Origin: Ascidiella aspersa
Lineage: Eukaryota
DNA: 64,000 bases
Direction of reading: 5' to 3'
NCBI GenBank assembly: GCA_963924565.1
Contig: OZ004610.1
Coordinates: forward strand, 9,114,001-9,178,000
In this document: positions 4,656-56,855 of the stretch, piece after piece
How the letters are laid out: the number at the start of each line of letters is the position of its first letter
How positions within the stretch are numbered: position 1 is the stretch's first letter
Made by a program: the position numbers and the translations under genes
Notes under the pieces: model-generated
The model's input: only the letters and a program-made list of their open reading frames with translations
Told to the model about the DNA's origin: nothing
Database searches by the model: none

Positions 4656-4781
4656 TTCGTCGAGCGACGGAGCTTCGCAGAGCAAGTGCCACGGCTGCGG
4701 CTTCGCGGTGAACACCAACAGCGAGCTGTACGTGTCGGTCAACTCCGTGCACTACCACAAGGACTGCTTCAAGTGTCGCAA
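4656..4781 (+). CDS. RAP1GAP: LIM domain exon 1 (first zinc finger plus first ligand of the second)
   Basis: Acceptor ttttccttttcag, donor AA|GTGAGT, 126 nt, phase 2/2. Translates SSSDGASQSKCHGCGFAVNTNSELYVSVNSVHYHKDCFKCR(K), matching C-x2-C-x19-H-x2-C-x2-C. Third codon positions are G/C-rich. Confidence 0.88.
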
Positions 4782-5069
4782 GTGAGTGTCCTTGTCCGTT
4801 GTTTGAAGTCGCCGTTTCCTTCCGAGTTAACTTTACATCTGGATCCGGCGCCGAATCAGAGTTCATTTTGTCGTTCTCGGTTCTTGCTCCTAAAGATTCG
4901 ACAAAAGCTCAATTAACTAGCGTTCCACATTAACTGCAAAACCACCGAAAGACTACAATTGTTTGTTAATTAACTCAAATGTCAATGCCAACTTTTAATT
5001 TAACCAAACAAGAAGTTTGCTTAAGGTTCTAAAGTAAAATCAAATTGTTTGTAAACCTATACCATGCAC

Positions 5070-5146
5070 ATAGAAATCGCTCGTCTGGTGTAAACGAAGT
5101 ATAAAGTCGGTTTATACTTCGTTTACACCAGAAGAGCGATTTCTAT
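5070..5146. repeat. Long inverted repeat (36-bp arms, 5-nt loop)
   Basis: atagaaatcgctcgtctggtgtaaacgaagtataaa-gtcgg-tttatacttcgtttacaccagaagagcgatttctat, one mismatch. Confidence 0.92.
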
Positions 5147-5407
5147 CTATTGATATGTTGCCTGGTGGAGCTAAATATATCTATACCATGCATTGTTCAT
5201 GATTTCGTATCGTTTTAATGTTTACGCAGCCATAGGACTATTTGCGTGCATGTCTAGGCCTATTGCTTGCATGTCATAAACCTAACGCGAAAACAAGAGC
5301 AAACATAAAAAATCTCCATCTTTGGACCTGAGTCGCAACGTCGAATGGGAAATTTTACCCCGGTCGGTTTGTTTTGCCTTTACACAAAACTTGGCATAAG
5401 CCGCGAG

Positions 5408-5430
5408 ATGGAGACAGAGATTGCGCGAAG
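5408..5430 (+). CDS. Candidate short alternative first coding exon (METEIAR)
   Basis: gagATGg start and a perfect AG|GTAAGT donor in phase 2. It is very short, so chance cannot be excluded. Confidence 0.45.
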
Positions 5431-7462
5431 GTAAGTGAAACGTGACGGACTTTCCGAATCCACAACCAAGACACGAGTAACATCAGCTGCGATTACCGTG
5501 GCTGTAACATTAGCGCCAACAATGGAAACCACCTTATTGTTCCGAACCTAAACACGCAAAGTGCTGGTTGTGCCGTTGTTGGGCTTTCAGTCACTTGCCT
5601 TGCACCACACACGCTACACAGCGTATATTAACGAGGCAATTTAGCGACGTGTTTGTCCGAGGCAAACAGCACATGATGGACACACTTTATGGGCGTGTTT
5701 TTCTACGTTATACACAAACAGGAAAATGGCTATGGACCTCTGTAGCACGTGATTATTCTCGTGCCTTTTACGACACTTTGCAGAATTCTGTTTTGCTGCT
5801 TTGCTGGTTGGGTCTGCAGTGCGTTGGTGGGTCAGTCATCTGGTTTGAATGTAGGTTAGGGATTAGAATTAAGAGCTAAAATAGTCAGCGGTTATTTTCG
5901 ATCGTGGTGGGAATAAAGTAAATTGAGCAGGTTAAAATCGGTTTAGTTTGAACTGGACTGAATCAGCAAAGCTTTCGTTTAAAAGCAATTTACTTTTTTT
6001 TAGATTACCATTAATTTGGAAATTGGGAAACGTAACTTTGGCATGCCAAAAGCAACTTGATTTAAAGAAAGAGCAGTTTTTACTTAAGAGTCGGTGTCTT
6101 CTCATGTTTCTAATCGAGGGGTTATACAACACTTTTCGTCGTAAAGTCTTCGGTTTTCCCGCTTACCTTTCTCCTGTGCTAAAGTTGCTTTGCTTCATCT
6201 TGTGTTTGATCGTTTGACGTACTTGCGGTGGTACGGCCTCGATAGCTAAGTTCACGGGAACAGCCAGGCCCGTTTTACTTTTATTTTGGCCAGGTTGGGT
6301 ACCTTGCTCCCCGCGAATAAGGCTGTAAAGGCCCGCTTTTGAATAGGTCGTCTACGGCCGATTTTAAAGCGGGCGTTAAATGTTTTTAAAAGTGCAGACC
6401 ACAATAACAATCCTCCTGCTTCCAAAACAAGCGATCGACCACTGATCTCAGGCGGATTACAGAACGACCGATTTGTAGCGACTTCTTTGTTGGGCGCGTA
6501 AGCGGCCGAAGAGACGTAAACCGTTTTTGCTTGCTATAATCCGAACGCAAAAACGCGCAAAGTCGATCGGTTTCGCGAAAAGTCACTTGTTGGTTTTCGC
6601 TGGAAAACGCGCCTTTTCGAGGTCGAGAGGTGGCTGCTTCGGTTTTGTGTTTGGCTCGATGAAAAAAATATTTAAAGCTTACAGTGGTGAGAAAAGGTGC
6701 TTTGCAGTCGCCGTCCGTAGTATTTACAGGCGGCTGACGCCTTACGGTTCGAGACTCCTATGTTTCTGCAACAAACAACGAATGTTGCATAATCGGATGA
6801 TCGGATCCAGCCACAATCTAAGGTGGAAGATATTTGAACTATACCGATTACACAGGGAACTTTAATATTCGCCATATCGCCACGGATTAGTTGTTTTACA
6901 CTTTACAGGGAACAAAAAGTCCATAGGGAACGTAACATTTCAGACCTTGAATGCTTTCGGGCTAAAATATTGCGTTGATTTACTGCTAATGTTGACTTGA
7001 ATTTAAAATTGCTTCGTCTGATAAAAACTGTCGCCAATATTAGAACGGCCGCCACAATGCCGGACCGCGAAAATCCTAGGCTGAACGCGGGCGGCCGCAA
7101 CATATGACATTTAAAAGGCAGCGAGCGACGCCGCAGACGCAACGAGGAGGTGAAAAGCACTTCCTTAAGCCATCCTTCTGCGCCTCTCGAGCAGGAGCAA
7201 GACGCGGTCGACCCACGTACATGCAAACCCACCCGTTCGTTTGTTCGCCAAGCACCGACAAAGGACCGCGTTCACTTTGTCACGTACGCGGCATTCGGCG
7301 CCTTGCTTTGCCGCGAGGCGGACGGAAATGCCGCCGAGATGTTTCCTCTTATGCAACTGAGAGGAACCACAGCGCGCGTCTTACGCAACGTCCAATCTTT
7401 TAGTGGAAAACGTTTCACAAAACCTTTTGTTCACCCTTTGCACCTTAATTCAACCCTTAAAC

Positions 7463-7743
7463 CAGTGGTTCTCAACCGGGGTGCCATTTATAATGCTCAA
7501 GGGTGCCGAGAGATATTTGACAATTTTAAGAATCTAATTTTTGCTCAACTCTTACAATTTTTTATTGTAATGATTAGAGTGGAATAAAAAACTCAATTAA
7601 ACTTCCTACGTTGTATAGTTAATGTGCGTTGTTCGAGTTCCGTTTATTGTGAAATTCTATAGTGAATCACCTATAGAATGATTGTCGTATAAATCTTGTA
7701 GGGGTGCCGCAATCTGTTAGCCATAAAAGGTTGAGAAACACTG
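7463..7743. mobile_element. hAT-like (Charlie-type termini) MITE, family A
   Basis: TIRs cagtggttctcaacc / ggttgagaaacactg (14/15 match) and a perfect 8-bp TSD ccttaaac at 7455-7462 and 7744-7751. No coding capacity. Confidence 0.88.
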
Positions 7744-10700
7744 CCTTAAACTATAGTACATGACTGTTTAAAAGCTTTACTCATCGTGTTTGTGTAGGCT
7801 CTGTTGCAGCACTGCTGCGGAAAACTGCCTTTAATTGCTTTTATGAATTTTTGGTTGTCAGATTTTTGGAACCAGTCATCAGTAGGGTATATAAATAATA
7901 TGGGTAGAAATATGTCTGGTAAATATTGGTGTAGTGTGTGTTCTCGCGATTTCTCTTCTGAAAATATAGCAATGGACGAGACATGGTTTTATTCAGGAGA
8001 AAGACCTTGCTAACTGGCCAGTGTGTATTATCGCTTGTTGGGAGGCGATATTTGACAGTTAAAAGGGCATCGGGTTTCGGTATACCGGTGCGTCTTGAGG
8101 TATACGAGAGAAGGCGTTAAGCTTCAAAAAACGAAATAAATTTTCTAACTGTCCATACCGTGTTTCAGTTTGCCGATAGGATTGACTTTTTCTGGTCGTA
8201 AAAACAGCTAGCATTTAAAGTTTTCGAATGTAAGCAAAAACAAATCTGATAAATATATAGACGTGCCTTGTCTTTTCGCCTCTCACCTCATTTTTCACGG
8301 GTTTTAATAACGTCAGCGAAAAGTACAACTGACATAGCTTTGTATGCTTTTACAATGCGCGATGAAAGATAAATTGGGTATCTTCGTGTCAGCGGTCTTA
8401 ATACTAAATTTCTATAAAATAATCCTAATTCCTGTGTAGTTTTTAGGGTCAGATGCCGTGCATACCGCCATACCGTGTCAAAGTGTTTCCCCTTTTCTGT
8501 TTGGCAGCGCAACATTCCAAAGCAAGCACAAGTTTCGCAAACCCGCATTTGTATGTCGTTAGTCAACACCTTAAAGCGGTGGGTGTGTTCGAAACGCCCA
8601 TAAAACGCGAATAACATGCGGCCTTGGCGTAAAACCGCATTGCTTGTTTGCTGCGCTGTTTATTTCGCAATTTGCCAATTGATTTTCCGATTGTGCGCCA
8701 TATGCCCAGAATTCAAAGCGCGCCCTCATCAACTGATACATTTTGCTAGTGCCAAGATTGAATATATTTTGTTACCTTTCCACGAAAGCCAAAACGAGAA
8801 TGATTTGCTATTTCGACCCATGTTAAGAAATTATTTCCTTTTAAACTTCGCCCAACTTAAACCTCGAAAAACAAGAACATTAGAAATATAAACTTGCATG
8901 TGTAAAATGATATAAGTTCAAGCGGGTTTGCATTGCTGGACAGCATTTGCCTTGGATCGTGTTTCTATGGTGACAACCGCATATCCAAGCGGTTAACACT
9001 ACACCGTTATTTCCTCTACAACGGCGGTTTTTGCCGCAATATTTTCGTGTGGTTTGGTTACAAAAAGCAGAACAATTCCAGAGGGCCGATGGTTTACTAC
9101 ATGAAAAGGCCATCTTGTTCTAGCTTAACCACGCTTAGAAAATTAAAAAAAAACAGCGAAAAAATGATAACCAGCGACAAGCAGACGTGTAGCGTATGTC
9201 TGTATGTTTGGGTGGCGTTCAGGGTGAGACGTAAGTGTTGTGTGTAAATTGCGTTTTGCGACCGCTAAAAATAGACGCCGGCGTGTCTGTTTGCGCACTT
9301 TAATTGAGGTGAAATTAACGTTATCGCGTATAGAAATCAAACAGCCGCCTAGCGTATTTTTTCCTGTACTGATACAGCTATATGCATATATATAGGCAAT
9401 AGGCATGCTTTACACGGACTTGGTTTGTACTCTTTAAAACAACAAGAGAGGGTTGTCAGACGTATGATAAAGCTTCGTAATTTTATTAGCTTTCGTTTTG
9501 GCAAATGCTCATGTCATCTACAGTTGCGGAAATCTAAGATTCGAAGCAAAATGACGCTAGCAATGTTATGGTGGAACATTGTTGGACCGAACAAATGACT
9601 GTAAAGTTTTATTATTTATTTGGGTCGTTCTTTTTCCACTGTACAGATATATGTAGGAAACAATATGTAAATTAATTACGGCGCAACACCAAATTTCAAT
9701 GGCGTTGTATTTTCAATTAGTTTAACTGGAGGCTACAAACCGTACAGCATAAAAAAAAAAAAAAGTCCGCCGCAGTTTCACGTTTACGGCGAAACTCTCC
9801 GGAAGACGACGCAGGTATCACGGCTTTCTTCCGTTCCAGCTGAAAACGCGCTCCGAACAAAATCGAGACGAAACGTGTAGAACCAGAATTGTACACACCG
9901 TCCGTTTGCAGAAAGAACAGAACAGAATAGCCGGTACTGCGGATATGCCTTTTGCCGTGCGGCCGTAGGAAGCGACCGCATAGAACGCTTAATAGCAACC
10001 GGTCGGGTGCCAGCAGTCGCCCATCGGCGCACTTACGCGTGTCTGCGATGGGAAACTCGGCTTCTTGTTTATACTAAAATGGTGCCCTGTGCCGGTTTGC
10101 GCTCTCAGTTGTCACTGGAGTAAGGACGGGTCCGCTGATAGACTAGTTTCGCCATTGCAGCTTATGTTTATCGCTAGTGAAGAGGCTAATCGCGACATAT
10201 ATACTTTAAAGGGGCTAATCTCGGAACTATTACAGTGCACTTTGAGAAAAAAGCAAACAAACCAGTAGTCGTGAAACTGAAAATGTAGCGGTTTGGCTTT
10301 ATCAGTAGCATTTAGACTTGAAAAAGTTTTGGGAACTTCGATTTTAGGTTAACTAAAAACTCGTTTAGATCTCAGCTCCTTAACGCTGGTTTTAATATCG
10401 CCAGCAATAAATTCCGCGTACTTCATGTTTGTTTCCTCAGCGCGATGAAACACTTCAGAACCATGTGAAGGGTTAACCCACAAACTCCGAGTAGCAATAA
10501 CGCCGCTCCAAGTATCATTTCACAGAGCAAATATTAATTTAAAGAAAACGCTTGGTGGCGCAAGGGAGCAAAAACAGAATAACCACGTGTGCCTGTGTTG
10601 CATAACTGTCTAAGAACCAAATCAAACTATACGCATTCTATTGGCCTCTGTTCTAAACTTTTGTATGCCGAACGATTTGCGCTATTGGACTCCGCTCCCT

Positions 10701-11110
10701 CGATTAAACTTTGATATCCAGGCGGCTTTGTTGAATTGTGGGAAACGTTACGAAATAAAAAGGCGAAAATATCGCCCCAAACCCCTTTTGACCCTTTTTT
10801 TGCTTCGCTCATAAAAGCGCAAGGCACTGGCCAGCAGTCAATTCTTGCTCGCTTTTAGTTTTGTGCACTTTTGTACAGCTCAGAATAACAGGAATTTCAA
10901 ACCCGACAATGCATTTTCAAACCTTAAAAACAACGCAATCGCCTCGCTCAAACATTAGTGCTTGATCCTTAAGCGCATCCTTATTTTTCTCGATTGCTAC
11001 CGGCTTGAAAACTCGCGCGACCTCACCTCTTCCCAGTGCACGTAGTCGTCAATCGCCGTCAAGCGCTTAACGCGGGACGTATCCTGCCACTTTCCAGAGA
11101 GAACCAATCG

Positions 11111-11499
11111 TCGGTGGCCTCCGTGTGAACCCGCGGTACACCGAGGTCGAACTCCCCATCGGGGCCAACGCCCCCACCGCCCGGCTAAAATTAATGTAGC
11201 AATTCCAGCCATAATTTCGTAAGTCAACTTAGCGATTTTACCTAGTGGTAAAATTATCGAAAAATGGTAGGTGACAAACTGCTGGAGGTAACTAAACTTA
11301 GTAAAAAGTAAATTGTAATTAAATACCTTACGAAAATTTTTTTCAATTTTACTTGTTTTGCTTGTGAGTCGGGGCACTTTATGTCCGAAATATCTATTAG
11401 CGCCGGAATACAGTGTCAAGAATCGGTGGCCTCCAAGTGAACCCGCGGTACACCGTGGTCGAACTCCCCGTCGGGGCCAACGCCCCCGCCGCCCGGCTA
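11111..11499 (+). repeat. 77-bp GC-rich direct repeat flanking an AT-rich dispersed repeat copy
   Basis: 11111-11187 and 11423-11499 differ at 5 positions. The enclosed 11201-11425 is similar to 12974-13227. Confidence 0.88.
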
Positions 11500-11702
11500 T
11501 CCCACCCTCTTAACCTGTGGGTCGTGCTTAGCGTACAGCCGATCTGCTGTATACCGTGCACGGCACGACCCACGCTGCCTGGCCCGCTACCTCGTCGCGC
11601 GAGGAAATGTGCCTTTCCGCGCTGCAAAGGAAGCAAGTTAGCTGATGGGGAAATTGATCGGGCCAAAAAGCGCCCGGCCGGCACGCGATTGCGCCATAGA
11701 GA

Positions 11703-11729
11703 TGTGCGTGTGCGTGTGCGTGTGCGTGT
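11703..11729 (+). repeat. (TGTGCG)n microsatellite
   Basis: tgtgcg repeated about 4.5 times. Confidence 0.8.
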
Positions 11730-12551
11730 ACTGCTTCAACAGTGAGTTTATTTCGAGGCAGATCAGTTGCGTAGTTTGTAGTGCTACTATGAGTAAGTTT
11801 TTTTAGTATATTATATAGGTATGATATATGGTAGTTTCATTTTTGTCACCCTTTTTCTTTTTTTGTGTCGTTTTTTCTTTGCGCCTTGTTGGCCATGTGT
11901 GTCATTTCCTGATGAAGCTTTCTAAATAATTAGCCCAAACGTTGGACAAACAAATAGATACCAGAGGAACTTATTTTTAGTATGCTATGCCTGGTAGCAA
12001 CAGCATATTTATATAGTAGATTTGTGCATCTTGGTTTCATAGGGCTGTGACGTATTTTCTCTTCTAGGATGCTTATTGGATAACAATCATCTATTTTCTG
12101 CTTAACTTACTTGTGCGGTTTCGGTTTGACCAGCATAAACAAAAGAGTTTTTCACGATAACGGCAGCTGTCGTTGTTTCAACTTTCGGCCGGTGATGCAG
12201 GGCACGAAAAACCCCCAACGCAAAACGGTTTCGCCGCGTTGACCATTTCACGCTGGCCAACACAAACTCGATAGTCATAGTATTAGTCATTTTTAAAGAA
12301 AGCATGCCAAAACAGCGCGTTTCGAACTCTCCATTGTACAACTAGGGATCGCACGCAAAGGGTAGGCGCTTCTAGGGATGGCGGAAGTGGGCATTTTTTT
12401 AGTTTGCTTCTTGTGTTTTGAGCCCCTCGCAGACAAGACCCCATGTCGTCTGCACGCGTCCAACATTTAGCAAAGCCGCTTTCATGTTGTTTAGAAAAGG
12501 GTAGAGGAACTCGTTTGGGGGAAAGGGGCGGGTGAAACGCTATCTAAGCTT

Positions 12552-12641
12552 GGCTGGTAAGATGTTTGCTTAGTCAAGGCTGGTAAGATGTTTTGCTTAG
12601 TCACCTTTTGAAGTTAATTGCACCTTTTTGAAAGTTAATTG
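12552..12641 (+). repeat. Two abutting short tandem duplications
   Basis: ggctggtaagatgttt(t)gcttagtca twice, followed immediately by cacctttt(t)gaa(a)gttaattg twice. Confidence 0.8.
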
Positions 12642-12973
12642 TGCTAAATTGGGCATTGAAAAGTTAAGGGTTTACAGGAAAGAAAAGGCAAATTTAGGCG
12701 ACAACCATGCCTTACTTTCAACAGTGTTTTATTTTGTTGGAGGTTGTGCGAGGATACTTCTCCATCAATACAATATAGTATGATAAAATAGGTTTTTTAA
12801 AGCTTTTACACCATTTGCCTTTATAGCCCTATTGCAGAACATACCGCGTGTGTCAATTTCGAGATGTCAAAAAATAACGGATCAAGGTTGACATCCAATA
12901 CCAAGTTGTAGTATCGATATTCGCGCGATACTAGGGTGGTATCGGTACCCATCTGATACCAAATGGATATAAA

Positions 12974-13227
12974 AATTCCGGCCATAATTTGTAAGCCAAC
13001 TTAGCGATTTTACCTAATCTTAAAATTAACAATGGTAGCTTGGATGGTCACAAACTGCTATAGCGATAACTAAACTTAGTAAGTAAATTGTGATCTAATA
13101 CCTTTTAAAAACCTCCAAATCTATATTGCTCGTTAAGTATAGTAATGTCGCTGTTTGTTATTGCGTCGGATCGGGGCTCTTCATGCCCGAAATATCTATC
13201 GGTACCGGCATAAAATGTCAAGAATCG
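12974..13227 (+). repeat. Second copy of the dispersed repeat at 11201-11425
   Basis: Shares the blocks aattcc.gccataattt, caacttagcgattttaccta, taactaaacttagtaa, ccgaaatatctat and tgtcaagaatcg in the same order. Confidence 0.8.
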
Positions 13228-16191: not shown

Positions 16192-16245
16192 CGCTGCCAA
16201 CGCTGCTAACGCTGCCAACGCTACCAACGCTACCAACGCTGCGAA
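16192..16245 (+). repeat. 9-bp tandem repeat, 6 copies
   Basis: cgctgccaa, cgctgctaa, cgctgccaa, cgctaccaa, cgctaccaa, cgctgcgaa. Confidence 0.88.
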
Positions 16246-27502: not shown

Positions 27503-28542
27503 ATGGCATCGTCCGCGTCTTCGCTTCGCAACAACAGTTCGCTCTTCTTCGAGCCGACCAGCTCCCCTCCGCCGAAGAGAACACCCCCGGACAGTCTCTC
27601 CACCGACTCGGGCTTCGCGACAGAGCACGCGTTCACGACCTGCTACGAGAACCCGTGGACCCCTCGCTTCGCCCCAACGCGCCGACCGCGCGCTGCAACG
27701 GCCTTGTGTAACCGACCCAGGACGCCGTTCAAGGTCAGGTTGCTGGACTCTGCCGAGCACAGGGTGTACCCCATCTTCGACGACCCTCCGCCGCCTGGGA
27801 CCTCCTTGCCTGCCGAGGTAGCGAGCCTGGATTCCAACCATATACCCGTGAGCAGAAGCTTCTCGAACGACGCCAACGAGCGCAAGTCACCTGGACGCCG
27901 CCGCTCCACGCTTCGTCCACTCTCGATGATGGCTGCCACCGACGACCTGGATCTTCAACTTGAACTGGAGCGGCCTCCGAGCGCCGGTAAAACGCGCGAC
28001 TCTTCAGTGGTGATCGCGCGCAAACCATCGGCAGCTTTGGTTGAGCCAACTTTAAGCTTTGCCGGAGTGGAGCCTTCGCTTGATGAAGCAGCGGCAGACG
28101 ACGCGTCCCAATGGCTGCAGGAAATCGAGCAGACCACACCCGCCGTTGTGATGCGCGTAAAGAAAGACTCGCCCGAGCAGACTTCCGAGAAAAAGTCACG
28201 CCGCAGATCGCTTCCCTCCATGTTCGGTCTCAAGCGCAACTCGCTCTCCGGCCTGGCCCTCTTCCGGAACGTTTTCGGCGCCGCGCGTTCTCATAGCAAC
28301 GAGCTGGACGAGGACATGGCCAAGACGCCGCCGACCGAGGCGCCAGTTAAGCCGAACGATTACGCGCGTCGTCAATCTTTGCCCGACGGACGCTTCGCGG
28401 ACGCGTTGCTAGGCAAGGCCTCTTCCGGAGGACGCAAATCGCGGAAGATTTCCTCCGCCTCTTCCCTCTCATCCAACTCCTCTTCGTCTTCTTTCGGGAG
28501 CAGATGGCGTCCGACCCAGCGTCGGAAAGAGAGAAAGCAAAG
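27503..28542 (+). CDS. Large alternative first coding exon (346 aa, Ser/Pro/Arg-rich, probably disordered)
   Basis: Longest ORF in the window, with codon usage like the GAP exons. It ends at a strong AG|GTAAGG donor just before its stop, in phase 2, so it joins in frame to 40966 or 53871. Confidence 0.82.
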
Positions 28543-40500: not shown

Positions 40501-40536
40501 ACAGCTGAATATCTTTCTCTCTTCATTCAAAGGCCT

Positions 40537-40567: not shown

Positions 40568-40593
40568 TCCGTCTATTCCTAATAAAAGAAACC

Positions 40594-40965: not shown

Positions 40966-40998
40966 ATGCGACGCACCGCTCACCCTCAAGACAGCCCG
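40966..40998 (+). CDS. RAP1GAP: LIM domain micro-exon 2 (33 nt)
   Basis: Acceptor tgccttgtttttcag, donor CG|GTAAGT, phase 2/2. Translates (K)CDAPLTLKTA(R) and supplies the sixth LIM ligand at exactly C-x2-C spacing. Confidence 0.85.
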
Positions 40999-43592
40999 GT
41001 AAGTGCCAATAAGCCTATAGCTTTTTAAATTTGTTTTGATAACCGATTTACAATCACTGTGATTTAATTGAACGGACCCTTTGCACGTACAACGCGGTTG
41101 GAGAAGCGTCACGCAAACATGTTTTCTAAAAAAACAACACAAAAAACAACAACACCTTCCACCCACATCCACTCATATTCCTCCCAAACGACGCGATTTT
41201 TTCGAGAGGGTGCACATTGATGACGTTGCCTGGTCGTCATCGATTTATCCCCCGAGAGGGCAAGTGGCGCGTGCGATAATAGCGCGCGGCCGCCCTTGCC
41301 ATTTTCTCCCTATGTATATGCGAACAAACGGCTGCATTCTCACGCAACAATAGAGCCGAGTTGTTTTTTATTCCCCGGCTAGTCATGCGCTGCTGGCCTG
41401 CTTGGCGGTTGGACAAATCTCTGTGCCGCTATGTGGGCGCTGCTGCCTATGCAGGCTAGATTTATTGCAGTTGTTCTCTTTGCTGCTTTTGTAGGACGGG
41501 GGACGAAGGTCGAGCAGAGTTTAGAGTATTTATATTGTGCAATAGAAGCACAACAAACAGAACTGAGCTGTGTGCTAAGGAAGTGGTTACTTTTGCAAAG
41601 GAAGTGGTTAATTTCAGACAAACTTAAAACAAAATTAAAAGCTGTATGTGAAAAATTATTTAAACATAATCCGAAAGGATATTTAAAAATCATTTAAATA
41701 TAATATTTGTTTCCACATTTTCTGTAGTTAGTTTAAATACAGCAGGACTTGAAAACAGGGCAAGGTTTTAGATCATTTTATTTAGCCTTGAGCGCCAAGA
41801 CGAAGTGCAGGGCGGAAACTTAATATCTCCTGTGGTAAAAGGCAGTAGACTGGAGGTCTCCCGCCGGTTTCTGACTTTTCGAAAATTTAAAAACAAGCTT
41901 CGCAGCTCTCTAGTAGGGCGGCCAACTTCTGGCCGGGCTCGCTACACATTGCGAGAGGCATTTCACAGCTCATTGGCAAGCAGCGGTGGCCTGGTTGACT
42001 AGCGAGTTCAAAGCGGTTCGATTCGCTTTCGCAGCTTTTGAAAAAAAAAACACGGAACAAAACGAACCTCGCCTCAATTCCTCGCTTTAGCTATCGCTTA
42101 GTCGGCTCAATCGACCGCGACCTTCATAAGCCAAAGTCAACACGCGCCCGTTGTCGAGGGCTGGTGGTTTTGAATTTGTGTAAAACGATCGCAATAATTC
42201 CGTCCGGTTAGTGGTTTGTATAAATAAATTAACGCCAAACGCAGCAACTACAGCTGCTTTGTTCAGCGCGACTAATGGAAAGCTTAAAAATCTCGGGCGC
42301 CTGCATTGAGCGAAAGGCGGATATCACTGTTTTATTACGTTGAACTGTTTTGGAAGCGTACTAACAGTTTCAGAGAAGGGCTTTTGACAGGCGCTTTTTA
42401 AATATCTATTTGCTTAGCTTTCAGGGTGAGGGAGAGCAAACATTTTGCGAGGTAGTAGTAGCCGGAACTGCTTCTCTTTTTCCTTTGTTCGCCCTCGAAA
42501 GACGGATGTAAATTTCGTGCGCCTGGCTCGCCTGAACTTCAAAAAAGGCGCCCAAAGCATACATGCAACTAACTAAGTGCCCGGTCAGGTTCTTTGTCAG
42601 GACTTTACCTTACCTCAGTAGTCAGCATAACGGTGCCAAGGAGCCAATGTCCGCCTTGTTTTTGCTTTATTGTGCAACTCGGTCGCATTTAGTAGCTAGT
42701 CAGCGCGATCAGTCGAAATGCAACCGTCGACGACAGTTGCAAGTGCGCGGCAATTATTTCGGTTGGTTTAGGAGTTTCTGACAACGTGACTGACCAGGGA
42801 AAACAGCTCGCGCCGCTGGACGCTGTCGTGTTTACACAGAGCCCTTTGACGCGAGCGCGCTCGAAAGTCGAGAGCGCTTCATCGCCAAGCGTTTCTGTGA
42901 TTCCAGGCGTCGTTTTCTCGTGGGACGCGCGCATTGCGGAAAGACACTCGCCCGCGAAATATTCGCCCGGGCAATAGGCGACCCGCCGAGCTTAGACCGC
43001 GGCGCCGAGGACAAGGCAGACGGAAGGCGGGCGGCTAGGTGCAACCCGATCTGACCAGCGTGCGTGAAATTACCTGGCCTCACTCGCCCCGGAGCTGCCA
43101 GGCTGCGTGTTTGTTCTTAAGTCGCGTTATTTTCGTGCGGTTGGCACCAAGCGAGCATTGCTCGTATAAGCAGGCGGCGAACCCGCGTTGCACGACGCCG
43201 TGAGTAAATGCGAAAGTGCATTATAGGTTGCAGGTATAAATCAGCGTGAGTCAACATGGGGTTGCCTATAGGCTGGTGTTAGGACAGTTTACGCCCAGCA
43301 TTCCAACTGGAAGCCAGGGCGAAGCAGGCGGACAAAATTCGCTCTAAAAACGTTGGAAGCATATCAGTTATCTTTGACAGTTAAGAACAGTGATTCGGCA
43401 GGCCCTTAGTGAGACAGCAGCAACTTATTTAACTGTGTTATATGACAGAGTATTTGCTCAAAGTTTGAGTTGGGTTATTATTTGTCTTTGTATTTTACCA
43501 GTTTAATTCTTCAACGTTGTTTGGTGGCTGCCAACCAACCAAACAGACTAGGTAATTTTGTTGTAACTCGTAAAGAACCAACAAGTCACGAA

Positions 43593-43951
43593 ATGAAATC
43601 CTTGCGTCGTCTATCGGTGCGCCATAGCGCCGATGACGTCATCGAGCAAAGCCGCCCTAAAAACCTGCCGTTGGTGGCGGAAGGCAAGCTGTCACTCAAG
43701 GCCGAACTCCGCGCCTCGTTTTCTTCCCTACCTCACGCCAAGCTCCAGCGAAAACGAGCGACCAGTGGGATTGCCAGTGAGCCCGAAAGCAGTCCCGAGG
43801 TTCGGCGACGCTGGTCGCCCTTGAGCGGGTTTCTAGCGTCACCAAACGGCTCGAGCTTCTGGCTGCCACTGTCCCCTAGGAGTCGCTACAGCGCCAAGAA
43901 GAAGCGCCAAGCGGCGACGGCAAACTCGAGAACTGGAGATTCGGATTCAAG
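43593..43951 (+). CDS. Candidate alternative first coding exon (119 aa, MKSLRRLSVRHS...)
   Basis: ATG-started, Ser/Arg-rich, coding-like stretch in an AT-rich context. It ends at AG|GTGTTT in phase 2, shortly before its stop; the donor is weaker than the others. Confidence 0.62.
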
Positions 43952-44234: not shown

Positions 44235-44269
44235 TATATAGCAGGAGCACTTGCTGCAGAATTTCAGTC
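44235..44269 (+). promoter_or_regulatory. Putative TATA + Initiator core promoter
   Basis: TATATAG at 44235 and TCAGTC with its A at 44266 (TATA at -31), followed by ~485 nt with no ATG. Confidence 0.4.
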
Positions 44270-47165: not shown

Positions 47166-47257
47166 ATGGTTTCTCGAGTCTACGTTTCTCCACTTTTCGC
47201 CGACCTTTCAGAGGACGACGACGATGACGTCATCTATTTGCCTGCGGTGACGTACAA
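47166..47257 (+). CDS. Candidate alternative first coding exon (MVSRVYVSPLFADLSEDDDDDVIYLPAVTY)
   Basis: ATG to a consensus AA|GTAAGT donor, 92 nt, phase 2. Its LSEDDDD motif recurs at the start of the 53091 exon. Confidence 0.62.
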
Positions 47258-50200
47258 GTAAGTGGCGTGACGTCACGGGGAGAGGTTGTGAATGTGAATG
47301 CGTGTGTATGTGTGAATAGAATAATAGTACTATTGTCAATTGTAATACGCTTTCAAATAAGCACATTAAAGTGTGATTCGTGCAATCAAATACAGTCAGG
47401 TTAAATATATAAAAACGGCGGAGGTTTTACATTTTTTAAAGGATTATTATACATACTTGATTCACAACGCAATTTCGACGCAGACCCAATTTTGCTCGAT
47501 TACATTTTGCCCACCCGCTATATGCGCACCATATATCCCTCTTAGAGGCCACTTGACATGAAGTGCTGTGTGCCACGAAACGTCCTTATTCCAAAGTGGC
47601 TGTAAGGTAGATTATTACCAATAACCAGTTCGCAAGCTTGTCCCGAACTTGTGGCCAACAGACAACGTCTGTTGTCTCACATCCTTGCTTTTATCGCATA
47701 AACAATAAATGGCACTTTTATTTTGAACAAGTTGTTAAATTATTTTTACAGTAGTGTTCATATAATTTTTTTGCTATTTTACCAAAAATAAGGTGCTATT
47801 GATAAAGCATGTAGCATCTACCCGTCATTTTTTTTCTTGTGCAAGCCTTAAATATAGACACCCTACGCTTCATTAAAATGATCTTCATTAAAATGTTTAT
47901 CGATTTTTTAGCTTTTTGCCGGTAGTCAATCGAGGCCCAACAATAGGCAAAGCCACTTCTATCCCTATTCGCCGATTGATAGTTGATTAACTCAAAAGCT
48001 CAGTCTTAAGAATAGCGTTGAAAATTAACGCAGGAGTGTCGCGTCACCGTTTCCCTGCAAATAAATGCGTTGGCGATTTTGTTGCTGACTGGCGTGGGCC
48101 AACTTGTTGTTGTTGTTTTTTTTACCGGCCAGTTTATTCACCGATAACGCCGCACAGTTGACAACAGGACTTGCTGACAGGATGTGAGTGTTTAAAATGT
48201 TAGTATTTACACGAAAAACGCCGCCCGAATTGAGCATTTTTAGCGTGCGAAATGTATTGCGATAAGGTTGAGTTTGTTTTAGTAGCGTGCTGATCGCCTG
48301 TTAATTACAACGTAAAGCGGAAGTGATAGTTTAATAGTGAACGTAACACAATGTTCCGGATGTAATTGCCTTCTCATTTACGTCCGCTGTATTCCAGGAA
48401 TCGTATTGATAGGTTCATAATGCAGTTTTGACACTGCGTTTTGCGCCCAGCCTACCATGATGGTTCACTGGGTGTAGGACCTAGTTTTGAGTATTGCAAA
48501 TGGATAGAGCACAAGAGCTGAACGAAAGAAATAAAGTTAGACGCGTCTTTAATGTAAAAACCAAAACCTTGCGGTTTTAGCTTGGTGGCTACAATGTAAA
48601 TTCGGCAGGTTGAGATGTGCCTTGCGCAATTTGTTTACGTTGAGTACACTTCGGTAAAGTTGGTCGGGAAGTCGCCTGGGAAGTGCATTAATTCGTCTGT
48701 CGCTTCCCGCTGCGCAACACACACCGTCGTGGACGTTTGCGTTTAATGTAAGCATTGCGCTCGCTTTCATTGAAACGCACCACACTTTGTGTTTTGCATT
48801 TCCGGGAAACGGTGTTCCTAGAAACGCTGACCCAACTGGAACAAGTAACAAATCCGTATAACGTAAAGAGACGCTTTAACAGCCTCTTGTCTGCAAAACG
48901 CGCCCTTAAAACAACAACAACAACCGCAAACCCATTGGCTTACTAATCACCATACGCAGTGAGATCAACCTGCGCCCGCTAAAAGTCGTAGCAGTAATTG
49001 CAACCGCGAAAAATAGTTTGTGTGCTGTTGATTGCCCTCTTGCGGCCGCCGGAACGCCTTTCTCCGATCCGCGTCGCGTCGTTAAAGAGCATTTCATTGC
49101 GCTCGCGGTTCGCGACATGGCGTTCGGCGTCGCCGCGGCGACCCTTGAACAGTCAAAATGTTATCGCGGCGTTTTTGATGCGACTCGGACAGGAAGACAG
49201 TCTTTTCTTACACGCGACCGATAGTTTACTTGTAATGGAAAGATGTACTAAAAGGGGCGCGTCAAGATGCGTTTTGACTGACTGTGGGCATCAGTTAATA
49301 GGTTAGCGACGCACTACGAAGAACATGTCGAGTTTAATTCGTGCGCTTGAATAAATTTTCCGTTTAAATTGCAAAACCCAAGCGTGGCGGAAACTAATTG
49401 GGTCCTGCTCACTGTATTTTTTATTATTCCTGACACACTGAGGTCAGCCACGCGCGGCGTGCGTTTTGGCTCAAGACCCGCCATTATTAAATGACCTTTT
49501 CTGCTTGGAAGCTTATTACGTGGTAATGCAAGCCCTGGCGAACGTTAATTCAAAAATTATTTAACGTCGCGTAAAAATTGCCCCTAAAGCCCCGAGGGAG
49601 CGCTGTTATTATCAAGCCTGCTTATGTGGATTGACGGGCGATAATTGACTAGTTGTAACCGGCGACTTTGAATAAAAGCCAAGCTATGCGTTTTCACCAG
49701 TCTTTTTCAACCCGTTCGCCTTAATTGCCTGCATAAGAAAGTTTCGTTTAATCGCACAGATAAAGATTTCGTTTCAATTTGCCGAGCTAATTAAAAAAAC
49801 GCGGTGAAGGGCGCTTCAAAGAAATTTCACTAAATTCCTGTAAAAATCGTCACCTCGACGTGACGCCGTTCTACAAGGATGCCGTCACGCTGACTTTCCA
49901 AATATGTCGTCCGCCGCATTGGATACCTGACTTAGGTCGAGCCGAAGATATTTCATGCTTCGGCCTCCAATGAGCTGCGGTTTGCAGTTTGTTCGAGTTG
50001 AGACGTGGCCGAGGTTGGAGTGGCGCGATATGCGCCCAGTCAAGTGCACTTGAAAGCCTTAAGTTTTTTTTGATAGTTTTGTTATCGCATCACATAAGAG
50101 CCTTAGATAGAACGCAATCAGTTTCGAAATTAACTGACTTTTTGCCGCCGGGTTTACAAGAGTAAATGAATAGAGAAGTTACAGTGGTGAGTGTTATTAG

Positions 50201-52089
50201 TCTCTGGTTTCTTTCCGAAGGTAAAACAAGGTTTGCGTTTCCCAAAAGCGTGAGTCGTAAATCCGTACAACTAAGCGGGGATCATTCGCCAGTCGTAAAT
50301 CTCGAAAGCAATCGCGTCGTTCAGCAAGATAGTCCCAGTCGCCTTATGCATGGGCGCGCCAAATTCGCTCTAGGATTTTCGATCGATTCCTAGGGACCTT
50401 TATTGCGAGGTTAATTGGACGCGAACATGGATTTTTTACCGGCTTAAAAGAGGCTCGTCATTGGATGCCGAAACTCCATTTCCCTGAACGCCATAAGCAA
50501 GACGGGCAACTTTTTTCCCGCACGTCATGTATCTAACGTGTAGGCAAACAGAGGCGCCATAGCGAGAGTGGGTAGAACAGTAGCGTCGCCTCACCAAACG
50601 GGCGTGTTTTCTTGAGAGGCAGGGCAGCTATAAAGGTCTTGCGCGCTTATGGCATTAGGTGGAAATAACTTTTCCCCGCAATTGGTCGATCATTAACCGG
50701 TCATGAGTCGTACGTGTTTACCATCCGAAGAACACAAACATCTCAACGCGTTTTGACGAATGTGTTTATCGCCGTTTTGTCAATTCGGTCCCGGGCCGCC
50801 CAACGCGACTCGTAACGCCAAGGAGAAGATAATTGAGATGCCCAGTTTACCGCCTGTTCAGGTTGTGGTAGTTGCGCCTTCAGCCTTTGCTGTCAGTCAG
50901 GATTTATCGTCGGCGCCGTTTTTTCTCTCGTTAGCGTTTTTTTGTGAACACCAAATAAAGTAGTTGTGATCAGGTAGGGCGGCGGCGATTTATTTTCTTC
51001 GAATTGATTTGATCAAGGCAGTTTAGTCGGTAGTCTTTTGCAATTTTTCCACGTGAAAACCCAGAAATTATGTATGGGAGTGGTATTTGTAGAAAGGAGT
51101 TGACAATACAATATATCATTTTCCTGTTAACGTTGGTCTGTATTTTGCGTTGCCAGTTTAGCGGTTAAGTTTACTGTGTGCCACTGTTTGTTTGGCGTTC
51201 ACCTGGCATTGAAAGTGTCAGCAAAGTTGATTTTGCCAGCTGGCCCAGAGCAAGCGCGTTAAAGCGTTTAACACTCCAGCGGTACCGACTCTGTTTGCTT
51301 TCGGTACAGGTTTAAAATCGCGGAAAAATCAATTACTGGTCGGCCCATTGTGCGCCTATTATATACTCCATTCAGCGACGGTAACAATAGTTGCTGGGCG
51401 AAGCCTCATCGGGGCAGAAAAAAGCGCTGGCCGCTAGCTGAGTTCCGTCGTTTTGCCGTGTTGTTATAAGACGCAACTTGACACGTGCGCTGCGAAGTAC
51501 AAGCGATAATTGCGCGCTTGTGCTGCATCTGGCCCGATTGTTTTTTGCCTCGGCCAGTATGATATCAGGTAACCTCCCGGTACTGTTTCGCATTGTTGTC
51601 AGACGTAGAGAGAAAAGAGTTGTATTGTAAGTCGCGGTTGGGGCCGGCAGACGGAATGTTAATTGGCTGCGAGATTACCTTTAGGACCTCATCAAAGCAC
51701 AGGCAACTTGTGCGCGATTTTAAACCGCGGGCTTTAAACCATGCTGACTAATTTTGTACTTTTTAATAAAAGGGAGGTTCCAAAATGTCGACAGGAGTTT
51801 GAGTTTCCAAAGCCAGCGTTACAGTTCAGCAAAGAGAGTTTCGAACAATTCCATTGTGCGGCGATTCGCTGGCTTTCTTAGGCGGAAATTCGTGCTGCCT
51901 ACGCTGTTTGCTTAACGCAACCCAGCCGCGTCCCCCGGCGAGGTTTTGAACGTGACGTATAGTGGGCGGAACCCTTGGTTAATGTGCAACAACGAAGCGA
52001 ACTTTTTCGAGTCGAAATCGTGTTGTTTATCACGCCGAACGCTTAAAGTGTGACGCCCGCGTTCGAAAACGTTCGCCGTCTGACTCAGG

Positions 52090-52369
52090 CAGTGTTGTAA
52101 ACAATTCATTTTGAGCTGACTTAAGTCCCAGTCAAGTCATTTGTAAAGTAACTTAAGTTCAAGTCAAGTCCCAGTCAAGTCCTTGTCATAAAAATTATAT
52201 ATTATAAAAAATTATATTATTTTAACCCAAGTCATTTTTTCTAAATACGGAAGTCAAGACAAGTCATTTGTCCAAAAGACTTAGGTTAAGTCATTTTGTC
52301 TACAAGACTTAAGTCAAGTCATTTGAAAACAGTGACTTAACTGCATTCACTTAAGTCTTTACAACACTG
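52090..52369. mobile_element. hAT-like MITE, family B (internal CAAGTC repeats)
   Basis: Perfect 12-bp TIR cagtgttgtaaa / tttacaacactg, perfect 8-bp TSD gactcagg at 52082-52089 and 52370-52377, and many subterminal (c)aagtca motifs. Confidence 0.9.
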
Positions 52370-53090
52370 GACTCAGGTGTTTTGAACCCGAAAAACGCGC
52401 GACCGAGGCATTTACCAACGTTCTTGTTTGATAAACCGACGCGAACCCGTTCGACTTACATCGATTTTAATATTCCTTTATTGTTTCTTTGCGCGCTTTC
52501 AATTTGCCGGGCAATCGGGTTAAGGCTCTGTACGGTGCTTATGTCGGACAAATATGTGCCATTAATGTCGAGTGGTCATCGATTGGTCTGAAACGGCCGA
52601 AGCACCTTCGTTGTGTAAATAACGGCACATTTCAAAGTTGGCGTTCTGTCCTTCCGAGCACGCGTTGTTTAGGGATTTTTTTTGTATTTCTGGAGAAATA
52701 TTTGCGTTGGTCTCTGTCGGATCGATGCCTTAGGTGCTGAAAAGTATACTACAATAAATGTGTATTTAAGGGAAGGACAGTTGTGTTTAAAAATACATTA
52801 CGTTTTTTGGTCCGTTGATCAGAGAATGCGCATACCACGAAATCTGCCTCGCTTTTGCCTTGTGAATCACGTATTTACGCCTTTGTGAATTTGGGGAGAA
52901 AAAACGTGTGTTTGTTAACTTGTGGTTTGTCATGACGTTCGTTTTCAAGTACCCAGCCCAACCCTAAGCTATTCAACACTAAGCGATAAAGAGTTAACTT
53001 GAGAAATTGTGTGTTTGCTGCCTGTGACGTGTGACTGAAAAAACGACCCCCCCAGTGACGTCACCCGCAATACCCCTGCTTGAATCGCAG

Positions 53091-53594
53091 CCCCGACGAG
53101 GAGGAGCTTTCGGAGGACGACGACGACCGACCGCCGTTTCCATTCGCCCAGCTAGTGCACTGGCCGGCGCTGGGCAAGTTTGCGCTCAAGTCGCCGCTTG
53201 CAAGTCGCCAGTCGAGCGCTGAGCTGCGCTTGCAAACTCAGAGCACTTCGGAAGTCGAAAGCGGCGCTTTTAATTCGAAGGAGCACTATGGCTTGCGGCG
53301 CGTGCGCAGCGTAGGTCCGTGCGACGACGCTAGCAAGCTCTCAGCGGCTCCAGTGGCGCGTCTGCGACAAAGAAGGTCGGCAGTGTCCGCCGCCGCCTCG
53401 TTTGACCAGCCCAGCTCTGATATCGGCTTTCAGGAGGAGCTGCTCGATCAGTTCGGAATGCCGCTCAAGAAGAACACGCTTCGCATCACGGCCCGCTTCA
53501 TCGGCTCACTGCAGAAGCACGCCAACCAGAAGGCGAGGGCCGAGCGGGTGGCCGCCGCCGCCGCGCTCGCCACCTATCTCAACAACCCGGGAAG
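53091..53594 (+). CDS. Symmetric phase-2/2 cassette exon (168 codons)
   Basis: Acceptor cccctgcttgaatcgcag, donor AG|GTAGTC, 504 nt, open frame PDEEELSEDDDDRPPFP...YLNNPG with coding-like codons. An in-frame stop at 53056 and no early ATG indicate entry by splicing. Confidence 0.75.
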
Positions 53595-53870
53595 GTAGTC
53601 GGATTTTTCGCGGCCGCGCGTGGGCGTGCCGGCGCCACACTCACGTTTTTCGCGTTTTCGTGTGGCGCTTTACGCGCGTTAGAACGCCCAACACACACAT
53701 ATACATAAGACACATCACGCACTCCAACCGCGTCGAGTTTATTTATCTCGGCTTTTTGTTTGCGTTTACCTCGGCATTTTGTCTGCGCTTTCCACAACTT
53801 AAACACTATAGTGTAAATAGTAATGAAACTGCCAGCTGCGCGTTCTTTAACATACTTCATTCGTTTGCAG

Positions 53871-53949
53871 CAAAGAGTCGGACGGCGGCATCTTGTGCGA
53901 CCCTTGCAATCAAGACGACGGCAACGGCGGCAAGATGTCCAACGACAAG
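53871..53949 (+). CDS. RAP1GAP: LIM domain exon 3 and linker (shared phase-2 acceptor)
   Basis: Acceptor cttcattcgtttgcag, donor AG|GTATGT, phase 2 in and 0 out. Translates (R)KESDGGILCDPCNQDDGNGGKMSNDK and supplies the final C-x2-C of the LIM. Confidence 0.88.
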
Positions 53950-54496
53950 GTATGTCAATCCCCTGCTGTGCTTTCTCGGTGCTTTGTTCGTTGACTTGTG
54001 CATTCGCGACCCGCGTTAACGTAGAAAGGTGTCGTCGGTGTGTGTACCCACCTGCTGTAACCGTGTACTGCACAGTAGCGTTTTGCCGTGATTTTAATGT
54101 GAGCCTTCGGTGCCCTGTTGTGTAGTAGAGCACGTTGTTATGTTGTAGCGGTGTCGTAGCTTGACACGCCCGTTTGTATTGTGGTGCGATACGAACTTAC
54201 CAGAGGTGAACATCAAGTAATTGTGCTCCCCGAGGAATCTCTCCAGCCATTTCACTGAAATCGACCCCTTCGCAAAAAAGGCTTTCAAGCACGCCGGAAA
54301 CGAGTTATTGATTTCTGTAGCTGTTTTTTTTCATGGTGATTTCTTTCCAAATTAGTCACGCGTTATCACAAAATTACTCACATAATTAGTTTGAACACAC
54401 ACAGAAGGCGATTTTAATTCATCGCTCATCCGTCATACAGGAATTGGTCGCACAATGCGAACTTTGCGTCATAGCCTGTGTTTTTGTCTTATTTAG

Positions 54497-54532
54497 GCCG
54501 ATGACCTGTTCGCCATGCTCGAGAAAATGCAG
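54497..54532 (+). CDS. RAP1GAP: GoLoco motif exon A
   Basis: Acceptor tttttgtcttatttag, donor AG|GTAAGC, 36 nt. ADDLFAMLEKMQ resembles human RAP1GAP NTDLFEMIEKMQ (from memory). Confidence 0.93.
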
Positions 54533-56786
54533 GTAAGCAAAGCAAAATTCAGATCGATATTCTTAAATCGGATAGCACACACTCGTATCTCCAATAAAAT
54601 GGGCCTGGAGTACATTCGGGTGCTAGATCCGCATTGGCAATGCTTAATTCTTTAATAGGTGCTGTTAATTTGCTTAATTACTTATACGGTCATGTCTGCA
54701 TTTCCGCTTAGACTGTACCGATAATAATAACGTATTGACCATGTAAATGATAGCTCTAACCTAATGCATGTTTACTAAGCTCCTAGCAGCGTAATGAGGT
54801 CCGACGTGGTGTTTGCCAATTTGCATTAGCCGTCCAATACTTTTTTACTTAAAGTTTTGTACTTTGGTGACTGGCAATTTCCCCTTCTGCATTTCACAGA
54901 ATCCCGCGCAAAGGACAGGCAACGTAGAACAGCGAACTTTCATCCTGCATTTAGCCTTTTATATGTGTTAAACACATCTTGTATTATCAGCTGTGTAGCC
55001 TTTATGTACAACCGGTCGTGAAGTGTCGTATCTATATTGTTTCGCATGCCCCAAGTTATCGTCAATCAGGGTAAAACGACAGACACAGAATGAGGTTTAT
55101 AACTGTAGAGTTGAAGAGTACGCATGTAAGTTATGCTCAAATCTGATCCAATAAAATCGGGCCAAATATGCTCTAGTGCCATTTTCACCTCAGGACAGTA
55201 CTTTGCTTTAGTTAAAAAGTGATTTAACAATATTTTAGTATATGATTCGTAGGGCAGTGTTTGTTTTTCCCCAACTGTTTATAACGCAAGGTATTTTGTC
55301 TTATAAAAAAGTATACTTTGTTTCCCCGAATTTAAACCTGCGAAGATGGGCAATAGTTGGATTTTAAAACCCACCTATAGGTTCCACCTTTGTGACCCAT
55401 ATTATTTAAAGTTGTTGCTCTAAAGCACCCGGCGAACATAAGTGACGACGCCCAACAAAAAAAAAATACAACAAAAGAGATGTGGTGCGCTGACCTCATT
55501 TTGACGTTTGTTTAAGTTCACTCTCAAGCGCCCAGCAGGCAAGGTGCGCGCGAGCACATCCATGCGCCCATTGTCCTTATAACACGACGCCGCACCTGCC
55601 TTTCAAGGGCAAAGGTACCACCGCTCCAAGCCCCAAAACTGCGTCAAGGCGTACGTCCATCAATAGGTTCGGAAAAGAAGAACTTGCGCCAAGCGTTGGG
55701 CGCAGATCACGTGAACACTTGAGACGCCTAGGTGCTCGCCCGCAGAGCACTTCCTCGACGAGCGGAAGCGGCTTATTATGTCCCCTGCCTCTCTCTCGCC
55801 AGCCTGCGTGATAGCTGCTCGCAGTAAAGCACTTCTTCTTGACAAGGAACGCGCTGCGTAGCGCTAGGAAGGCGACAGCGCGAGATGTGCAAGCAACTGA
55901 CAGTCGCAAACGAGAGCCAGAACCGGACGCGTCGTTGTCAGCGGCTAATGCGTGGATTACATATGCTTGTTCACGTTTGAGTTGTAAATCACTCTAACAT
56001 CGCTGTATTTCATGAGTGTAGCAGCTTGTCACGCTAATACTTTTAATTCAGTCTTGAGTCGAAAGTTCGAATTAGAGTGCGTGAGTTATAACTATATTGG
56101 CGTTTTTGCAGTCGACAGAAGGGACATCGGCCTCTACGATTTCAGTCGAATCGTAAAGGGCGAGGCAGCGGAAAGGTTGCGTCGAAATATAGGCACTGGG
56201 CAGCAAGGGCCTTGCGTGACAACGCTCCGTGCACTGACTGACCTTTTCGCGCAGGGCTATTTACGTTCAACTAAAAAGAGTCAGTTATTTTCCGCGATCC
56301 GCGCTTCGGTGTAACAGCTTGCTCAGCTTAGATTTTTTTATTCAAGTTATATTTATCGCGTGCACGTTTTCTGACCCAGTCGAATCGTGCACTCAGGAAA
56401 AGTGCTAGGATTTTTAAACAAGCAAAAACGTTAGAGCTATATCTAATGTTTGCCGTAGAATGAGAAAGGAAGGCAGCAAAAATGAAATGCAGAGGGTACG
56501 GAAATACTCGAGAAGCTTTCGATCTGCCATCAAGTACTCGGTACGGCCTTGGCTTTTTGTTTATATTTTATTTATATAACTTAATTACGGCTACCGCCTA
56601 ACAAATTCTCCCACGGTTCAATTTCAAGACAATGTCAGTTGCCAATGACATACATGTCGATTCCCAATTTTAACCACAAAATCTAAATTTGGTTGTGATA
56701 ACGGTCGAACTCTTACCCCTGCAAACCAACAAAAGTAAAAATAACTTGGGAGCAGGCTTGAAACTTGTGTTTGATTTATTTTCAAG

Positions 56787-56855
56787 GCGACCCGTATGGA
56801 CGAACAGCGGTGTTCCTTCCGCCTTCCAAATGCATCCGAGGCGGACAGTTTTCAG
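56787..56855 (+). CDS. RAP1GAP: GoLoco motif exon B
   Basis: Acceptor tttattttcaag, donor AG|GTCTGT, phase 0/0. ATRMDEQRCSFRLPNASEADSFQ carries the GoLoco EQR triad (cf. human GSRMDEQRCSF). Confidence 0.9.

Follow-up and report, generated by a model that had tools for sequence, protein, structure and literature searches.

Does a Rap1GAP gene of an ascidian encode a LIM domain, and if so, which of its products carry it? This question is raised by a stretch of 64,000 nucleotides from the genome of Ascidiella aspersa (NCBI GenBank assembly GCA_963924565.1, contig OZ004610.1, positions 9,114,001 to 9,178,000 of the forward strand), hereafter the window, whose first letter is position 1. An initial annotation had proposed that three small exons in this window, here called LIM1, LIM2 and LIM3, join in frame to a full eight-ligand LIM domain, and that the GoLoco exons of a Rap1GAP gene follow this domain without interruption. 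The present analysis suggests that the window contains most of such a gene, which would extend over about 75 kb on the plus strand, and that transcripts from its most distal promoter acquire one complete N-terminal LIM domain, with the GoLoco motif as an optional element. We put the probability of this reading at roughly three in four.

The proposed coordinates, the lengths of 126, 33 and 79 nt and the splice sites of the three exons all agreed with the sequence (Table 1). LIM1 encodes the first zinc finger (C, C, H, C) and the first cysteine of the second finger. The micro-exon LIM2, which is compatible in phase with both LIM1 and LIM3, contributes the sixth ligand, a cysteine, and the beginning of the second-finger loop, and LIM3 completes the second finger (C-DP-C) and adds an acidic and glycine-containing linker that terminates in phase 0. 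The intervening introns measure 36,184 nt (LIM1 to LIM2) and 12,872 nt (LIM2 to LIM3), and the domain is thereby spread over 49 kb. Read by eye across the joins, the ligand pattern is C-HG-C, 19 residues, H-KD-C-FK-C-RK-C, 18 residues, C-DP-C. The LIM consensus is C-x2-C-x16-23-H-x2-C-x2-C-x2-C-x16-21-C-x2-C/H/D; all eight zinc ligands are present in the joined exons, both long spacers (19 and 18 residues) are canonical, and the aromatic residue preceding the His and the C-F-K-C signature are found as well. In the six frames of the window, which contains no N, the five-ligand pattern of LIM1 is unique, and none of 30 shuffles matched it. Profile searches were run exon by exon. LIM1 by itself aligned with positions 1-29 of the 58 positions of the Pfam LIM profile (PF00412), half of the profile, with an E value of 0.0012 and 19.5 bits at a cut-off of 22.9 bits, and a genome-wide LIM scan did not pick up the LIM1-LIM3 locus. 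The domain as a whole was tested on the orthologue from Ciona described below.

A HMMER scan with LIM1 against 1.84 billion cluster representatives yielded 16 matches, of which three were orthologue-like and the others were ordinary multi-LIM proteins. The most informative relative is UniRef100_H2XLV4 of Ciona intestinalis, a fragment of 174 amino acids listed in UniProt as 'LIM zinc-binding domain-containing protein'. Here, the three LIM pieces are contiguous, and their junctions fall at residues identical to those of the proposed joins. LIM1 corresponds to residues 76-113, LIM2 to residues 113-124 (10 of 12 residues identical), and LIM3 to residues 125-148 (identity about 60%). H2XLV4 matches Pfam LIM over profile positions 1-56 of 58, above the cut-off (33 bits, E 7.5e-8), and, with every ligand kept, can be aligned to the LIM structures solved for FHL3 and CRP2 (E 8e-6). 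A LIM1 orthologue with the same acceptor and donor positions is also present on a JGI metagenome contig from a different species, where it lies in a prokaryote-style ORF call. Three contigs of that species were compared with the window over 33 gap-free codons of LIM1: 16 codons are identical, 10 differ synonymously only and 7 change the residue, the differences at codon positions 1, 2 and 3 numbering 5, 6 and 16, respectively. The 60-nt flanks of the exon are 18-33% identical. Because the borders are kept, the changes fall mostly on third positions and the flanks have diverged, purifying selection on LIM1 as a coding exon is indicated. Exons A and B (see below), LIM2 and LIM3 were not found within the 2.5-10 kb flanking LIM1 on the JGI contigs. 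An ORF on a Logan contig from a third species shows the same end of the LIM1 exon. The uniqueness of the five-ligand pattern in six frames as opposed to the shuffles, the Pfam match of LIM1 and the conservation of the exons together exceed what chance would produce. On the strength of these comparisons the three exons are read as real coding exons of a true LIM domain, and the eight-ligand consensus of the initial annotation is borne out by the in-frame reading, the Pfam match and the conservation. The LIM-bearing N-terminus is older than the split between the lineage of A. aspersa and Ciona.

The identity of the gene follows from the exons further downstream. Members of the Rap1GAP family have a dimerisation domain ahead of the catalytic domain, as is found here, and the window exons together cover profile positions 2-184 of Rap_GAP, three of them with scores above the cut-off. 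The exon at 63248-63415 aligns with positions 207-260 of the human Rap1GAP chains 3BRW/1SRQ (E 6e-19), and its R-H-I-G-N-D motif corresponds residue for residue to positions 213-217 of these chains, so that the catalytic Asn is kept. We take this residue to be the 'Asn thumb', Asn290 of human Rap1GAP, on the assumption that the construct starts at residue 75. The 22-residue GoLoco motif can be read across two exons, D-E-Q-R arginine finger included, and conforms to the definition of the motif (about 19-22 residues, a helix followed by D/E-Q-R). GoLoco exon 2 matches Pfam GoLoco (PF02188) at positions 13-22 of 22 (E 1.3e-4); its 21.8 bits fall below the cut-off of 25.1 bits because the motif is split across two exons, and the same exon was also recovered by a scan of the Ascidiella genome. 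The exon that follows GoLoco (57901-58137) by itself matched nothing in Pfam or PDB, and a search for homologues among proteins of 0.55-1.75 times the query length, a range that leaves longer proteins out of scope, found nothing. An intact LIM domain, an intact GoLoco motif with arginine finger and a Rap_GAP domain with catalytic Asn lie in one reading frame on one strand. By its domain content, the gene in the window is Rap1GAP.

The Ciona fragment also connects the LIM exons with this gene. In a tblastn search, H2XLV4 matched, in order, two exons upstream of the window (A and B), LIM1, LIM2, LIM3 and window positions 57904-57972. The last two bases of exon B and the first base of LIM1 form an Arg codon, and five consecutive phase matches run from exon A through LIM3. 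An AG located 20 nt before the ATG of exon A may be a trans-splice acceptor; trans-splicing is common in ascidians. H2XLV4 represents the orthologous N-terminus: it shares with the Ascidiella gene the start M..N-Q-F-V-R-N-F-L-R-K-S, the basic stretch F-S-P-R-R-S-L, the LIM joins and the stretch P-L-Y-P-S-I..R-R-G, and its C-terminal end is 70% identical to the first 23 residues of exon 57901-58137. It differs in comprising 174 residues only, in not being recognised as Rap1GAP, in having no GoLoco motif and in ending before the catalytic domain. As it continues from the LIM domain into an exon situated amid the GoLoco and the Rap-GAP_dimer/Rap_GAP exons, it upholds the earlier assignment of the LIM exons to the Rap1GAP gene. 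The link from the LIM to the catalytic domain is suggested by gene order, strand, phase and this fragment.

Table 1. Exons of the Rap1GAP gene of A. aspersa and candidate alternative 5' exons, in genomic order. Positions refer to the window unless a genome coordinate is given.
Feature	Position	Strand	Properties
Exon A, with ATG	G000:C4:9109584-9109702 (L007:5584-5702), 4.4 kb before the window	+	tblastn match of Ciona H2XLV4; ends with 2 nt
Exon B	G000:C4:9110338-9110457 (L007:6338-6457), ~3.5-3.6 kb before the window	+	tblastn match of H2XLV4; 1 nt + 39 codons + 2 nt
LIM1	4656-4781	+	126 nt; borders cag / gtgagt; 1 nt + 41 codons + 2 nt
Candidate alternative 5' coding exon	27503-28542	+	ATG; ~347 codons, disordered, Ser/Pro/Arg-rich; ends ag/gtaagg, phase 2
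LIM2	40966-40998	+	33-nt micro-exon; borders cag / gtaagt; 1 nt + 10 codons + 2 nt
Candidate alternative 5' coding exon	43590-43951	+	ATG; ends ag/gtgttt, phase 2; fits LIM3 acceptor
Candidate alternative 5' coding exon	53458-53594	+	ATG; ends ag/gtagtc, phase 2; LIM3 acceptor 277 nt downstream
LIM3	53871-53949	+	79 nt; borders cag / gtatgt; 1 nt + 26 codons + 0 nt
GoLoco exon 1	54497-54532	+	12 codons, phase 0-0; N-terminal helix; good AG and gtaagc sites
GoLoco exon 2	56787-56855	+	23 codons, phase 0-0; M-D-E-Q-R part with arginine finger
First exon after GoLoco	57901-58137	+	79 codons, phase 0-0; P-L-Y-P-S ... G-G-Y-W stretch
Rap-GAP dimerisation exon	60661-60831	+	PF21022, 27.4 bits, profile positions 10-60 of 106
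End of dimerisation domain and start of Rap_GAP	61514-61714 (approximate, Pfam match limits)	+	PF21022 positions 83-105; PF02145 positions 2-27
Rap_GAP exon	62512-62664	+	PF02145 positions 25-75, 53 bits
Rap_GAP exon with catalytic Asn (R-H-I-G-N-D)	63248-63415	+	PF02145 positions 73-130, 65.5 bits
Rap_GAP exon, last inside the window	63721-63900	+	PF02145 positions 126-184, 39 bits

Which transcripts would carry the complete domain depends on where they start. The LIM introns contain three long open, GC-richer exons that share phase 2, for which the chance expectation is about 1 in 27. This phase fits the acceptors of LIM2 or LIM3 (either one for the exon at 27503-28542) and fits neither GoLoco exon 1 nor exon 57901-58137. 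The exon at 53458-53594 is possibly part of a longer open exon that begins at about 53090. All three probably serve the Rap1GAP gene as alternative first exons. LIM2 and LIM3 would then be shared exons, because all three candidates end in a matching phase, and only transcripts that begin at exon A, the most distal start, would probably contain the complete LIM domain. In the isoforms from the inner candidates, what is left of the second finger, with two or three of its ligands, would serve as a linker. None of the long ORFs in the LIM introns, on either strand, had a Pfam match, and no nested gene was found there. The three candidate 5' exons and exon B each contain a basic motif of the R-R-x-S type (R-R-R-S-L-P-S, R-R-L-S-V, P-R-R-S-L), which may be a site for a kinase or for 14-3-3.

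GoLoco may or may not follow the LIM domain in the same protein. LIM3 joins the first GoLoco exon in phase 0, as required if the LIM domain is to read directly into GoLoco, but the Ciona model skips to the next exon, which is also in frame, and the direct continuation proposed by the initial annotation is one possibility. Every junction among LIM3, both GoLoco exons and exon 57901-58137 is in phase 0. The frame would therefore be preserved whether the GoLoco exons are both included, only the first is skipped or both are skipped. Mammalian Rap1GAP1a has a truncated GoLoco motif and binds G-alpha-o-GTP, whereas Rap1GAP1b has the full motif and binds G-alpha-o-GDP (PMC12329598), and the GoLoco motif in the window is split at the place where these two isoforms differ (PMC12329598).

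These data leave three other readings to be weighed against the proposed one. The LIM isoform might skip the GoLoco cassette, as the Ciona model does. This would produce a LIM-Rap1GAP without G-alpha coupling and confine GoLoco to isoforms from the other 5' exons. In H2XLV4 the LIM3-like stretch indeed passes straight to the stretch matching 57904-57972, the phase-0 junctions would keep the frame, and it is exactly in the GoLoco region that the mammalian Rap1GAP1 isoforms differ (PMC12329598). However, both GoLoco exons of Ascidiella possess good acceptors and donors and are located between LIM3 and the next exon, which makes inclusion the default expectation, and the Ciona model may simply have missed two small exons, or the Ciona gene may have none. 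We regard such skipping as a serious possibility, albeit on the lower side of even odds. A separate LIM-only gene consisting of exons A, B and LIM1-3, upstream of and overlapping Rap1GAP, is improbable. It would turn the join in Ciona into a prediction artefact and would agree with the finding that no full-length LIM+Rap_GAP protein surfaced in the searches. Moreover, the frame read past the LIM3 donor stays open for about 20 codons before a stop, and a LIM-only product could arise by intron retention. LIM3 has, however, a strong donor in phase 0 that matches every downstream exon, and the phase that the three other 5' exons share with LIM2 and LIM3 marks LIM3 as a shared internal exon of Rap1GAP. 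The Ciona fragment, too, ends in the middle of an exon and not at an exon border, and in this respect it resembles a model built from an incomplete cDNA more than a chimeric prediction.

The remaining alternative, a chance pattern of Cys and His codons in non-coding DNA or a set of decayed pseudo-exons, might be prompted by the subthreshold Pfam score of LIM1 and by the failure of the genome-wide scan to register the locus. It is refuted by three other sequences in which the protein is conserved, the exon borders are kept and the changes fall on third positions, and the absence of shuffle matches as well as the integrity of eight ligands and five consecutive phase matches leave it next to no probability. 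Several observations nevertheless weigh against the reading of a Rap1GAP gene with a distal LIM isoform. H2XLV4 contains no GoLoco motif and stops inside the exon after it, never reaching the Rap_GAP domain; the HMMER scan revealed no long protein with this LIM exon; exon 57901-58137 was presumed to be the N-terminal region of Rap1GAP from its position and its presumed likeness to the vertebrate sequence; and the exon joins in the Ascidiella gene are predicted from sequence.

If the Rap1GAP gene does have a distal LIM isoform, its most distal transcription unit would begin 4.4 kb upstream of the window with exon A, which provides the ATG, and exon B. The distal transcripts would splice LIM1, LIM2 and LIM3 into one complete N-terminal LIM domain and continue in frame through the two optional GoLoco exons, the conserved N-terminal exon and the dimerisation domain to Rap_GAP with its Asn. 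LIM would thus be an isoform-specific addition whose presence is set by promoter choice, and the three inner open exons would yield isoforms in which the second finger is reduced to a stump. Rap1, which controls integrin and cadherin adhesion, is switched off mainly by Rap1GAP, and the N-terminal isoforms of mammalian Rap1GAP decide which form of G-alpha-o is recognised and where the protein is located. The LIM domain may act as a zinc-dependent protein-binding module that brings the Rap1-GTP-hydrolysing domain to a given partner or site, and the two-exon GoLoco cassette, if included, would couple the protein to G-alpha-i/o. The initial annotation had gone further and suggested targeting to adhesion or cytoskeletal sites. 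LIM domains that occur singly are generic modules for binding varied proteins, and strained actin is recognised only by several of them in tandem; a specific adhesion or actin role is not endorsed here. More tentatively, the gene may possess an array of promoters of which only the most distal adds a complete LIM domain before an intact GoLoco motif. In ascidians, and perhaps in other invertebrates, one enzyme would then combine a LIM address, an input from G-alpha-i/o and the inactivation of Rap1.

Comparison with known systems shows which parts of this architecture are unusual. Vertebrate RAP1GAP and RAP1GAP2 and Drosophila Rapgap1 resemble the window gene in having an N-terminal GoLoco motif over two exons, a dimerisation domain and a Rap_GAP domain with the Asn in R-H-I-G-N-D. 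Unlike them, the window gene would have one isoform with about 80 residues and a full LIM domain ahead of the GoLoco position. To our knowledge, no LIM domain has been described in these vertebrate and Drosophila proteins, and we know of no RapGAP for which LIM, GoLoco and Rap_GAP have been reported in one enzyme. Fusions of a comparable kind occur elsewhere. In RapGAPs of the SIPA1L/SPAR type, a PDZ domain is combined with Rap_GAP, and the adaptor domain places the enzyme at a cellular site; these proteins differ from the window gene in having PDZ instead of LIM, in belonging to a separate RapGAP subfamily and in lacking GoLoco. Fungal proteins of the Lrg1 type have N-terminal LIM domain(s) fused to a small-GTPase GAP, namely a RhoGAP. 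They differ in their several LIM domains and in the RhoGAP fold, which is unrelated to Rap_GAP, and they stem from an independent fusion event. LIM modules are often moved by domain shuffling. The window gene would add a lineage-level domain fusion to these cases. The generation of N-terminal isoforms by alternative 5' exons, as proposed for the window gene, has a parallel in mammalian Rap1GAP1a/1b (PMC12329598).

The novelty suggested by the initial annotation holds in part. A literature search found no report of a LIM-bearing RapGAP; a 'LIM' match in PMC3141262 proved to be the name of an author and not the domain. A homologue search with H2XLV4 among proteins of 0.55-1.75 times its length retrieved H2XLV4 itself only, longer proteins being outside its scope. 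The ESM Atlas contained generic LIM clusters for H2XLV4 and clusters of short Rap_GAP fragments for a catalytic exon, and no full-length LIM+Rap_GAP protein, a result that says nothing on longer proteins. However, the LIM N-terminus itself was already in UniProt as the Ciona entry, with its Rap1GAP identity hidden by the name. If the proposed isoform exists, the choice of a promoter that adds a LIM domain would be a new way of addressing Rap1GAP. For genome annotation, the locus is a warning: a domain split into 126 + 33 + 79 nt over 49 kb falls below genome-wide domain scans, and in Ciona such a split domain ended as an orphan 'LIM protein' fragment.

Some features of the gene and its surroundings remain to be mentioned. 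A tandem repeat with a 181-nt unit (1.9 copies, 84% match) occupies positions 61157-61506 in the intron preceding the exon that ends the dimerisation domain, and positions 60873-60971 hold 2.5 copies of a 40-nt unit. Upstream of exon A, about 7-8 kb before the window, lies a 281-codon open frame with the look of a coiled coil (L007:1937-2779, plus strand), which has no Pfam match and to which nothing corresponds in the N-terminus of the Ciona protein. The next gene is marked by an exon with a SURF6 domain (L004:7734-8486, plus strand; Pfam E 1.6e-30) about 7.7 kb beyond the end of the window, and the Rap1GAP gene must therefore end before it. Beyond SURF6 follow a PEX5-like and two single-exon amino-acid-transporter-like open frames, all putative.

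Rap_GAP domains occur at four loci of the genome: besides the window gene these are tuberin, another Rap1GAP-like gene on C6 and a further locus on C1. The second Rap1GAP-like gene (G000:C6:12286379-12293681, minus strand) has Rap-GAP_dimer and Rap_GAP exons, and the genome-wide scans gave no GoLoco or LIM match near it (12.29 Mb). Tuberin (TSC2; L013:3615-7409, minus strand, at G000:C1:25.85 Mb) is encoded by an uninterrupted frame of 1265 codons with DUF3384, Tuberin and Rap_GAP domains, which is unusually intron-poor for a gene of such size. A protein search with this tuberin frame gave no near-identical match; it places the genome among the ascidians and rejects an insect origin, which base composition had at first suggested. 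The identity of the frame is 63% to the protein of Phallusia mammillata, 49% to that of Clavelina, 47% to that of Ciona and 34-38% to those of fishes.

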